Assembly: GCA_002269645.1 (NCBI GenBank)
Contig: NIVC01000033.1
Coordinates: forward strand, 1-50,177
DNA from: Macrostomum lignano
Taxonomy: Eukaryota
DNA: 50,177 nt
Direction: 5' to 3'
Below the pieces are notes generated by a model. The model was not told the origin of the DNA. It did no database searches and worked only from the letters and a program-made list of their open reading frames with translations. The position numbers were made by a program, and so were the translations under genes. This document shows positions 47,001-49,914 of the stretch, one piece after another. How positions within the stretch are numbered: the first letter of the stretch is position 1; the number at the start of each line of letters is the position of its first letter.

Positions 47001-49914
47001 CTCATGGGCTGTCAGGACGGTCTTGCTGAGCAAGTCTGCAAGGTCATCCACTTCCTGACAGGTGGTTGGAGCGACGGTAGTCAGCTGATCTGTCTGGCAT
47101 TTCAGGGTTTCCGTGAAAGCCGTCCAGTCAGTGTTCCGGACGTTCCTTTTCCACAGAATGTGAGGCTTGGGGCAAGAGGATTGCAAATGAAAACGAACGA
47201 AGCGATGGTCAGACAGAGACTCCTCTTCGTCCCACACCTCCTAGTCCTTGACTAAAGGAGCCAAGCCATGGGAGACAAGGGTAACGTCGAGGGCCTCCGT
47301 CCATCGCCCGTTGTCAAAGGTGGGGGTTCCACCAATGTTGCAAAACTCAGTGTTGGTGGTGCAGATGTAAGCAAGGAGTTCCTCGCCTCTGCTATTGGAA
47401 GTATTACTGCCCCAGTGGGTGTGGTGAGCGTTGATGTCGCCCGCCACCAGCAGCTCGAACCTACGGTTAGAGCAGTAGTCCACGAGGGAGGTGAGGTTGG
47501 GTGGAACCGCGGGGCCATCGCCAGGGATATAAATCGAGGCGATTATGACCGTGCGGTTGGTGATAATGTGGTTGGACTGAATGACACAGAGATCTCTGTC
47601 AGAGAGGTCCGGTCTGTGCCAAGCTTTGAGATGGGTAGACACGAATGGCTGCTCTGGGGTTTTGAGGGTCTGAAAACAGTCAAAACCAGCAGGAATATTC
47701 GGAATCTTACCTTTCTTTGTCCAGGGCTCCTGGAGTAGGATGATGCCCGGTTTCGCAAAGTTTGCCACCCGCATCAGGTTGGTCGAGGCCGCGATGCAGT
47801 GGTGTAGGTTTAGCTGCAGGATGTCCACTCCGGGGATTCCACGAGTGGTTCGCGCAGCTTCTTGCCGGCTCAAGGCGAGTTGTGCAGGAGAGCTGCCTCT
47901 TCTGCCTCGCCGATAGCTCAGACTCCAGCTCCATGGGCTCCTCCCGGATGGATCCATGGTCGAGGGCATGTCGCTACCTGGGCGGCATTCTCGCTCTCGG
48001 CCTGGTTTTCCGGGGGGGCGCAGTGGTGACACTGGGCTGGCGGTGGCTGCGGTTGGGGGCCTTGGCGGTGTCCAGCAGCTGCTTCGCGCGCTGAGTCAGA
48101 CCAGAGCGGATAGTGTTCCGGGCGGGTTTCCGGCCCTTTCCACGTCCGCCTGTTGCTGCAGCTTTCGCGGCTTTCCCTCTGACGGGTCCACGTCCTCGGA
48201 GGGGTCGTGACGGCCGGGAGCTTCTTTTCCTGGGCGTTTCCGCCCGGCAGAGCCCCCGACAGCCCGCTTACGCTTCTCCGGGGGCGGTGGGCGGGTGGCG
48301 TCAGACTCAAAGCTAAAGAGCTGAATCTGCAACAGCCCGACAGAGATGATGGACATGTCCGGGTAGCGGAGCATCCAGCTATCCGACAGTCCAAGAATAG
48401 CCGTGAAACCGTCTCCGCCCGGCTTGGAGATGGTCTCGTGAACTACGACACCGTTGGCCGGTAGCTCCGGGTTGGAAGCCACTAGCAGGTGACGCAGCTC
48501 GTCGGCCTTGGTGATGCAGCTGCGAGCCGGGATCCAGGCACGGTGCCGGTGTGTCCGGGGTCGCTCGTCCTCCCTGTAGATGAACAGGTTCTCCAGCTCC
48601 GTACCCCAGTCGAAGGTTTTCAGCAGCTCGAGGAGCTGCTGTCCTGACTGGCTGTCGGCGGGCTGGATATAGAGGGCTTGGTCCTCGACTTTCGTCTTTT
48701 GGACTCGAATAGTAGTGCCGCTCAAGGCCATCTTGACCAGGTGGGAGTCCAACCTGCGCCAGATAAGGTCGAGCTGTTCGCCGTAAGAGGCGTCTCCTGG
48801 CCTTGGATAACCAGGGCCGGCTGCCTCTTGGCCATAGCCGCGTAGGTTCGCTTTGGCTTTGTGGTTTGGCCAGCGCCCCCCGCTTTGGATCCCTCCACAG
48901 CCGTGGGAGCTTCCACACGGGCAGAGGTCCGGTCACGGGAGGAGCCAGCCGCACCAGGAGCTTCGGCGGCACCTGACGCATCAGACCGGCTGATGTCGGC
49001 TCCTACGCGGGGTTCGCAGAGTTACCGGCACCCTCCTCAGAGGTGGCCGGAGGGGCGGCTTTCGCATTCCTCCGTTCCTCCGCTTTGCGCTGGAGAAAGG
49101 CTTTGTAGCGAGCAATGCTACGGGCCTTCTTTTTCGAAATCTGAGGTCCGCTGTCTTGTCCAGCCACTCCGGTATTATCCTGAGCGGCGGCAGCGGCAGA
49201 TTGAGATGCACCGGGGGTTCCGGTGTTGCGAATGTCCGGCTGGGCCGCGGTGCCAACCTCGGTTGGTGCTCCAGCAGCCTCGGACGTGTCGGAGGTAAAT
49301 GAATACTCCATGAGTCGCTGAAAGGCGAGTGGGGACTAGAGGTGAGAAGCCGCTGGGCCGTAACCCCAAACCCAACAACCAGGCCAAGAGGTAGCGACCG
49401 GGGGGTGGCTTAAGCCCGTACCGGCCCGACCGCTAGCAACCGAGAAACTCCCCGGCTAAGAGCCCGTCTTGGAGAAACCAGAGGCCGAACCAAAGGACCA
49501 TCAGCGCGGTACTACACTGGGCCCTTGAGGGAAGCAGGAGGACTGCCTCCGGAGCCTGCGGACTGGCCGCATACCCTGTTAAGGTCAGAGGGTGATACCT
49601 GTTCCTCAGAGCCGTGGCCAGAGGTACCTGATACGCACAGGTTCACTTCCGGGCGGAGCCCGTACCCAACTTGGCCAAAAGGCCACGGATGGGTTGCCGC
49701 CGCCGGAGCCCAGTCAGTCCAGCAGCCCTAGGGCTGCCTTGAACACATGCGGGGCGCGAACCCCTGGGTCGGCTTGCGAGTCAGCTTGGAGAGAGTTCTC
49801 CTGCCATTCCTGCACCAGAATAGAGGGGGTGCAGGTGTGTAGGATCGCAGACCTTAGCTCGTAGGCCTAGTCTGTCTCATGCTACACAGGCATGCTATAC
49901 CCGCCATTGCATGC
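44047..49914 (-). mobile_element. Full-length (5868 bp) LOA-clade LINE 'E2' antisense in intron 4 of gene C; ORF1 and ORF2 disrupted by stops/frameshifts
   Basis: 13-bp TSD tggaggccagcac (44034-44046 and 49915-49927); single empty site in gene B at 24155-24167. ORF1 from ATG 49311 to about 48096. ORF2: ILQLNLHH, LLQEPW, GDINAHH, SDH, QHAFR, PQGGVLSP, YADD (45856-45867), RNase H CFTDGS...GNELAD, GHG and CPFC...HFICEC; tail (ctaagt)n. Confidence 0.95.
49702..49914 (-). ncRNA. HDV-like self-cleaving ribozyme at the 5' end of LINE E2
   Basis: P1 GCAUGC (49914-09)/GCAUGU (49750-45) with G1-U; P2 gccgacccag (49773-64)/cugggcuccggc (49713-02); P3 GGG/CCC; L3 UUCGCGC; GU after P1 as in CPEB3-type; P4 ggcagccc-ua-gggcugcu; J4/2 CUGA (catalytic C at 49717). 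Manual fold. Confidence 0.8.

Follow-up and report, generated by a model that had tools for sequence, protein, structure and literature searches.

How does a dispersed mobile element come to have a precisely defined first nucleotide? A 50,177-nucleotide stretch of Macrostomum lignano DNA (GenBank assembly GCA_002269645.1, contig NIVC01000033.1, positions 1 to 50,177 of the forward strand; hereafter the window) raises this question through a long interspersed nuclear element (LINE), here called E2, which lies on the minus strand close to the end of the window. An earlier note on this DNA, made from the letters of the sequence, had proposed that E2 starts with a self-cleaving ribozyme related to that of hepatitis delta virus (HDV). 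Our analysis makes it probable that the first 213 nucleotides (nt) of the E2 RNA are an HDV-like ribozyme with a nested double-pseudoknot fold, and that this ribozyme defines the element's 5′ end. Catalysis is predicted from the fold.

Element E2 and the predicted fold of its leader

The 5′ end of E2 can be set independently of any RNA structure. A target-site duplication (TSD) of 13 bp, TGGAGGCCAGCAC as read on the plus strand, borders E2 at both ends without a mismatch. The window contains exactly three occurrences of this 13-mer, the two next to E2 and one in an empty paralogous target site. Self-comparison of the window aligned positions 23639-24167 with 43515-44046 at 93% identity and positions 24152-24419 with 49912-50177 at 95%; the older paralogue runs through the empty site without interruption. 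Since a perfect TSD pair and an empty site are found in the same window, G49914 is unambiguously the first base of E2. The same nucleotide is the predicted cleaved nucleotide of the ribozyme.

E2 consists of a 5′ untranslated region (UTR), two open reading frames (ORF1 and ORF2) and a 3′ end formed by a short (CUAAGU)n repeat in place of poly(A). ORF2 carries an apurinic-type endonuclease (APE), a reverse transcriptase (RT) and an RNase H, as indicated by Pfam matches of the frame pieces to Exo_endo_phos(_2), RVT_1 and RNase_H. The earlier note had called the element full-length. This description holds for its extent, from the 5′ UTR through both frames to the repeat tail and TSD, but not for its coding state, because ORF2 contains two in-frame stops and is interrupted by five or more frameshifts. 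E2 is complete in extent and coding-incompetent.

The E2 RNA is numbered with G49914 as nt 1, which places the putative ribozyme at nt 1-213 (49914-49702, minus strand). Every helix of an HDV-type ribozyme can be drawn in this segment, in the order P1-J1/2-P2-P3-L3-P3′-P1′-P1.1-P4-J4/2-P2′, giving a predicted nested double pseudoknot (Table 1). P1 comprises 6 bp with a G1·U170 wobble (G49914·U49745) at its base. P2 comprises 10 bp, five of them continuous and five further ones formed across two single-base bulges. In P3 the GGG at nt 152-154 (49763-61) pairs with the CCC at nt 162-164 (49753-51), enclosing the L3 loop UUCGCGC (nt 155-161, 49760-54). P1.1 is the single pair C157-G171 (C49758-G49744), and J1/4 is one nucleotide long. 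The features by which the HDV class is recognized are present in E2: the sequence C-N-R-A after P4 (C49717-U-G-A), and an L3 that contains the P1.1 cytosine and the conserved G.

The J1/2 segment, folded alone, is predicted to form a closed multibranch domain (−54 kcal/mol) that is joined to P1 and P2 by linkers of 4 and 2 nt. Plain minimum free energy (MFE) folding cannot represent pseudoknots, and we did not take it as evidence. The E2 fold with P1, P3 and P4 forced has an energy of −77.0 kcal/mol, the P2 duplex one of −13.5 kcal/mol, and the pseudoknot-free MFE structure one of −87.6 kcal/mol. The sum of the forced nested fold and P2 is comparable to the pseudoknot-free MFE, a point in favour of the ribozyme.

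For searches, the fold was written as a strict descriptor. It demanded that P1 have 6 bp and open with G·U, that P2 have 5 bp or more and P3 3 bp, that L3 read U-N-C-N-C-G-N(N) and J4/2 C-N-R-A, and that the P1.1 G and P4 be present. The E2 locus is the sole match to this descriptor in the window. Matches were obtained in 1 of 200 dinucleotide-shuffled windows, whereas 1000 shuffled versions of the GC-rich element yielded none. As the candidate was already in view when the descriptor was composed, the significance derived from these shuffles is somewhat overstated. A random match would additionally need to place its G1 on the single base that is defined by the TSD.

A second LINE with a homologous leader

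The window contains a LINE of a second family, E1, on the plus strand. E1 sits between the two parts of E3, a LINE fragment related to E2. After removal of E1 and one TSD copy by a script, the rejoined E3 flanks align across the junction with the corresponding part of E2. E1 begins with GCAU (GCAUAC) right after its own 13-bp TSD, at the G that is homologous to G1 of E2. The predicted cleavage site is therefore the 5′ end of the insertion in both copies (2/2), as established by the TSD and the empty site for E2 and by the TSD and the rejoined E3 flanks for E1. The first nucleotide is thus the same in two insertions whose target sites are unrelated. Three claims of the earlier note are borne out by these observations, namely that all HDV elements can be assigned between 49914 and 49702, each helix and loop having been located there, that the cleavage G is the first base inside the 13-bp TSD, and that E1 starts at the equivalent GCAU.

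E1 and E2 share 36% amino acid identity in ORF1 (over 117 aa) and about 55-63% in ORF2, a divergence that shows that they are not copies of one family. The bodies of the two elements share about 66% nucleotide identity. Their 5′ UTRs can be aligned for the first ~256-294 nt only and are unalignable beyond about nt 290. In the ribozyme core, E1 keeps P2, P4 and the P1.1 pair in full, and a C-to-U change in P2 retains pairing as a wobble. L3 and J4/2 together comprise 11 positions, four of which are free in the descriptor. All three substitutions between E1 and E2 in these segments (3/3) fall on free positions, an outcome with a chance of about 0.02 by our own combinatorial estimate.

The J1/2 segments measure 135-171 nt across E2 and E1. 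E1 repeats the architecture of E2 in the closing helix and the two hairpins that come first, and adds a 36-nt hairpin; a block of 24 nt is identical between the two elements. In place of the small GGAGA/UCUCC hairpin of E2, the J1/2 of E1 has a run of 12 C (33278-33290). This run and the additional hairpin suggest that the distal part of J1/2 is free to vary while its base is not.

The conserved stretch of about 45 nt that follows the ribozyme in both elements could fold into a hairpin in which ACCCA...UGGGU encloses an inner stem. Further downstream, the open frame of E1 ORF1 (start region 33622-33640) has no in-frame AUG near its start; its first in-frame methionine codon lies about 150 codons in, which may be due to decay or to ribozyme-assisted initiation at a non-AUG codon.

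Objections and alternative explanations

Several observations weigh against a ribozyme at this locus or qualify the case for it. P1 of E2 has just 6 bp and P1.1 just 1 bp. P1 helices of 6 or 7 bp are usual in HDV-like ribozymes (PMC4908430). P1 of E1 has one wobble (U·G) and one mismatch (A·C), and there is a further mismatch (U·C) in its P3. E1 is about 1 kb shorter than E2 and carries frameshifts. As E1 is a decayed copy, defects in its helices are expected rather than contradictory; dead R2 copies with ribozymes inactivated by mutation have been described (PMC3774820). The same defects mean that E1 supplies no positive covariation. A covariation count on the two sequences found one compensatory pair, located in a J1/2 hairpin, with 89% of cells paired, which is no better than shuffles. 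MFE z-scores are unremarkable (−1.4 and −1.6) and not significant. Both copies of the putative ribozyme in the window belong to decayed relics, E1 and E2, with broken reading frames. Finally, E2 lies antisense in the intron of a receptor gene and is thus a copy not placed for release from the transcript of that gene.

Database searches add to these objections. When the entire window was searched at gathering thresholds, Rfam returned nothing, and there was no HDV-type match at E ≤ 10 when 49000-50177 (E2) and 32900-33700 (E1) were searched as small search spaces. A J1/2 insert of 135-171 nt plausibly defeats the Rfam models and would explain these misses. No curated Rfam family accommodates the E2 ribozyme locus. 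Exact-pattern scans of metagenome contigs and prokaryote genomes found no further copies. With one exception, given below, no HDV-type motif was detected by Rfam and two descriptors in eight loci of the nearest retrievable relatives, from insects and metagenome contigs (L001-L008); the 5′ ends of these elements are undefined, so that this negative carries little weight. An nhmmer search of the window returned E1 and E2 as the only matches.

A relaxed descriptor, applied to both strands of about 198 kb of real DNA (the window and the eight loci), recovered just two other loci, both unconvincing. One relaxed-descriptor match with its C at 49262, in the 5′ UTR of E2, was dismissed; it has no L3 G, and E1 does not conserve it. 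The other, at L006:611, is without a P4 and was dismissed because it lies inside an ORF1 coding region. One of the loci, a JGI metagenome contig (L007), contains a 5S rRNA gene at 7473-7591 (Rfam, 40 bits), some 2 kb downstream of a LINE that is distantly related.

We then considered how the conserved leader might be explained otherwise. An identity of 81-89% in the first ~290 nt, set against amino acid identities as low as those of ORF1 and ORF2, and the abrupt fall to unalignable sequence thereafter could reflect a recent transfer of the 5′ module between LINE families, by template switching or recombination, instead of long-term purifying selection. Conservation would then be uninformative on function. 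We consider this explanation unlikely. The differences between E1 and E2 cluster in the J1/2 sub-hairpins and at motif-free positions and leave P2, P4 and the catalytic positions untouched, as selection predicts, and transfer of the module would itself imply that the module is useful.

The 24-nt invariant block and the compensated hairpin in J1/2, both maintained across families with such divergent ORF1 sequences, also allow a more speculative reading, to which we give little credence as a whole and in which the 5′ module would be more than a ribozyme plus spacer. The 5′ module may be a portable unit that is exchanged between LINE families, or J1/2 may have a second, sequence-specific job. This job could be binding of the element's own proteins, translation initiation or promoter activity, and the duplicated P1 strand described below could act as a conformational switch that gates cleavage.

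Another possibility is that the ~290 nt conserved at the start of both elements serve as an internal promoter, or as a 5′ UTR element of some other kind, for example one for protein binding or translation initiation. Transcription would start exactly at G1, and the likeness to HDV would be a coincidence in a GC-rich, structured leader. Some non-LTR elements (those without long terminal repeats) do have internal promoters that start transcription at the first base (PMC3774820), the identical block in J1/2 exceeds the conservation that a mere spacer needs, and the lack of an Rfam match and of covariation would be in line with this explanation. We nevertheless regard it as improbable, because the full set of HDV constraints, very rare in shuffles, is satisfied at once, because the differences between E1 and E2 in L3 and J4/2 spare every position that a ribozyme needs, and because the TSDs independently fix the same register, in which G1 is the base cleaved. 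A promoter role would in any case be compatible with a ribozyme.

Both E2 and E1 contain a second GCAUGC 19 nt inside the element (nt 20-25 in E2), which the earlier note does not mention and which in E2 is normally buried in the J1/2 fold. GCAUGC is self-complementary, so the two copies could pair with each other. A real ribozyme that uses this second copy as its P1 strand and cleaves 19 nt inside the element is very improbable. In its favour, the strict descriptor accepts both GCAUGC copies of E2, and in E1 the second copy pairs perfectly with P1′ (GCGUGU) whereas the terminal strand GCAUAC is mismatched. Against it, cleavage at nt 20 would yield copies that lack nt 1-19, which both families retain, starting at G1. 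Forcing the alternative P1 in E2 also breaks up the J1/2 domain, at an energy of −66.7 kcal/mol and thus a penalty of about 10 kcal/mol.

A ribozyme that cleaves 5′ of G1 is thus the reading we prefer, and it suggests how a functional copy may work. The RNA of the element would be made within a longer transcript that starts upstream. Pairing of nt 1-6 with nt 165-170 in P1 would set the phosphate 5′ of G1 beside C198 (C49717) in J4/2 and the metal-binding pocket of L3. The J1/2 domain, closed by a helix and connected through its short linkers, would together with the extended P2 hold P1 and P2 side by side. Self-cleavage would strip the upstream host sequence and leave G1, with a 5′-OH, as the first base of the retrotransposition template. 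Complete new insertions would hence start at G1 directly after the TSD. We infer catalysis, co-transcription and any role in translation initiation from sequence and fold. Release from host read-through transcripts, as proposed in the earlier note, would be a property of active members of the family.

Genomic context and known systems

The plus strand of the host region encodes a Cys-loop (nicotinic-type) receptor in three paralogous genes arranged in tandem, within a segmental duplication that is ~80-96% identical. The product of one receptor exon shares 98% identity with a database protein and 71% with a protein of Macrostomum lignano, which points to a macrostomid flatworm as host. In paralogue 2, the intron that separates the ligand-binding exon from the exon for the first two transmembrane segments (TM1-2) holds the empty site, which places E2 in the same intron of paralogue 3. 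Another retroelement (12127-14719, plus strand) has one ORF with a SAP domain followed by one with RVT_1, and shows no ribozyme match. It is directly followed by an array of 17 copies of a 26-bp repeat (14718-15156). Other short-period tandem arrays are found at 30330-30712 (20 bp, 19 copies), 43061-43259 (35 bp, 5.7 copies), 31147-31300 (23 bp, 6.7 copies) and 5761-5994 (11 bp, 21 copies).

Table 1. Positions of the E2 leader, the related elements and the host gene features in the window
Feature	Position	Strand	Remarks
Element E2 (LINE, 5868 bp)	44047-49914	−	boundaries from TSD and empty paralogous site; reading frames broken
TSD copy at E2 5′ end	49915-49927		TGGAGGCCAGCAC on plus strand
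TSD copy at E2 3′ end	44034-44046		
Empty paralogous target site	24155-24167		within segmental duplication; flank matches
P1 5′ strand GCAUGC, nt 1-6	49909-49914	−	G49914 = G1; predicted cleavage immediately 5′ of G1
J1/2 peripheral domain, nt 7-141 (135 nt)	49774-49908	−	closed multibranch fold (predicted)
Second GCAUGC, nt 20-25	49890-49895	−	possible alternative P1 strand
P2 5′ strand GCCGACCCAG, nt 142-151	49764-49773	−	
P3 GGG, L3 UUCGCGC, P3′ CCC	49751-49763	−	C49758 in P1.1
P1 3′ strand GCAUGU, nt 165-170 (49750-45), plus P1.1 G49744	49744-49750	−	
P4 hairpin, nt 173-197	49718-49742	−	9/9 pairs kept in E1; 96% nucleotide identity between E1 and E2
J4/2 CUGA, nt 198-201	49714-49717	−	C49717 (C198), directly after P4, predicted catalytic cytosine
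P2 3′ strand CUGGGCUCCGGC, nt 202-213	49702-49713	−	100% nucleotide identity between E1 and E2
Ribozyme core, nt 142-213			89% nucleotide identity between E1 and E2
~45 nt downstream of ribozyme in E2	49659-49701	−	still alignable between E1 and E2
~45 nt downstream of ribozyme in E1	33379-33421	+	
Element E1 (second LINE family)	33128-37999	+	13-bp TSD TCCCTGG(G/A)TTATC at 33115-27 and 38000-12
Homologous ribozyme of E1 (predicted)	33128-33378	+	P1 GCAUAC/GCGUGU, P3 UGG/CCC, L3 UACUCGU(C), J4/2 CAGA
Second GCAUGC in E1	33147-33152	+	
LINE fragment E3, related to E2	32225-32936 and 38044-38331	−	split by E1 insertion; no 5′ end in window
Segmental duplication	20234-24419 vs 39484-44046 + 49912-50177		
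Receptor ligand-binding domain exons	5307-5849, 21216-21548, 41880-42212	+	
Receptor TM1-2 exons	7323-7540, 25724-25941	+	
Receptor TM3 exons	8322-8500, 26752-26930	+	

The domain set of E2 ORF2 (APE-RT-RNase H) fits the LOA clade to which the earlier note had assigned the element, and is also common to the I, Tad1 and ingi clades. The nearest protein-database relatives of ORF2 are insect elements with at most 38% identity, some of which carry DUF4780 and RNase H. A link between ORF1 and DUF4780 was tried as support for LOA and failed: Pfam detected no domain, DUF4780 included, in ORF1 of either E1 or E2, and BLASTP of ORF1 against the DUF4780 ORF1 of a relative showed no similarity (E=5.7). 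An alignment search of a large protein database with ORF1 found no homologues. LOA-type is therefore an unverified candidate label, in agreement with domain order and best matches, to which ORF1 gives no backing.

If confirmed, the E2 ribozyme would add dispersed APE-type LINEs from a lineage of free-living flatworms to the elements whose 5′ ends are set by ribozymes. The coincidence of a filled site, an empty site and a second, diverged family in a single 50-kb window provides an unusually clean tie between a predicted cleavage nucleotide and an insertion boundary. In practice the motif could serve as a marker of complete LINE 5′ ends in the annotation of a repeat-rich genome, and it would offer a further HDV-like ribozyme with a large J1/2 on which to test the "pinch" model of activation by peripheral domains, discussed below. 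What is known of the processing of such elements remains unchanged; E2 adds a new, well-supported example of an established mode of RNA trimming. Among the full texts searched there was no report of a ribozyme in Macrostomum, nor of HDV-like ribozymes in dispersed flatworm LINEs.

The CPEB3 ribozyme combines a one-pair P1.1 with a 7-nt L3 of the pattern U-N-C-N-C-G-N, as in E2. Unlike E2, it is a mammalian single-copy intronic ribozyme with a short J1/2 that does not belong to a mobile element. The Rfam CPEB3 model gave no match at the E2 ribozyme locus.

The earlier note had pointed to HDV-like ribozymes in R2, RTE, L1Tc and Baggins elements, and precedents are indeed on record: 5′-terminal ribozymes of this type have been described for R2, R4, Dong, Baggins, RTE and L1Tc (PMC3774820, PMC6765202). 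Planarian R2 is among the known carriers, and in the non-R2 cases cleavage occurs at the first base of the element (PMC3774820, PMC6765202, PMC4035085). In Baggins1, R4, Dong and RTE (Ruminski et al. 2011, as cited in PMC6765202 and PMC3774820), the ribozyme comes first in the element and cuts at the junction between element and flank, as predicted for E2. The element type also resembles E2 in its APE and RT domains and, for Baggins, in RNase H, and the proposed role is release from a longer co-transcript. These elements differ from E2 in that their hosts are insects and not a flatworm, that the J1/2 of E2 is much larger, and that activity of E2 is a prediction. The ribozyme and ORF1 of E2 have no detectable sequence relation to the retrievable insect relatives.

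Like E2, R2 ribozymes have a double-pseudoknot core in which few nucleotides are fixed, a P2 that has 5 bp or more and is often mismatched, and a J1/4 of 0-2 nt (PMC3774820). Their J1/2 loops range from 23 to more than 700 nt (PMC3774820). The mutations that inactivate ribozymes in decayed R2 copies have their counterpart in E1 (PMC3774820). R2 itself is otherwise a different kind of element, which inserts site-specifically into 28S rDNA, has a single ORF with a restriction-like endonuclease, and often cleaves upstream in the 28S sequence (PMC3774820), whereas E2 belongs to elements with dispersed insertion sites, 13-bp TSDs and an APE endonuclease.

In architecture, the large J1/2 of E2 recalls that of drz-Agam-2, which has a structured J1/2 (P1.2), short linkers and an extended P2 of ~12 bp, compared with 10 bp and two bulges in E2 (PMC4908430). 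This arrangement "pinches" P1 against P2 and makes cleavage up to ~1000-fold faster (PMC4908430). The likeness is one of architecture, but J1/2 is a single helix in drz-Agam-2 and a multibranch domain in E2 and E1. The Pr77 ribozyme of trypanosomatid L1Tc/ingi elements is HDV-like as well and, as in E2, takes up the initial nucleotides of a LINE that is dispersed, has APE-RT-RNase H and is flanked by TSDs, here of ~12 bp; it releases L1Tc from long transcripts (PMC6765202, PMC4035085). Unlike the E2 leader, Pr77 is a compact 77 nt, doubles as a promoter, and comes from a different eukaryotic kingdom and a different clade (PMC6765202, PMC4035085). Judged by these analogies, the E2 ribozyme would work like the Baggins and L1Tc cases and appears to be built like the large Agam-2 and R2 ribozymes.

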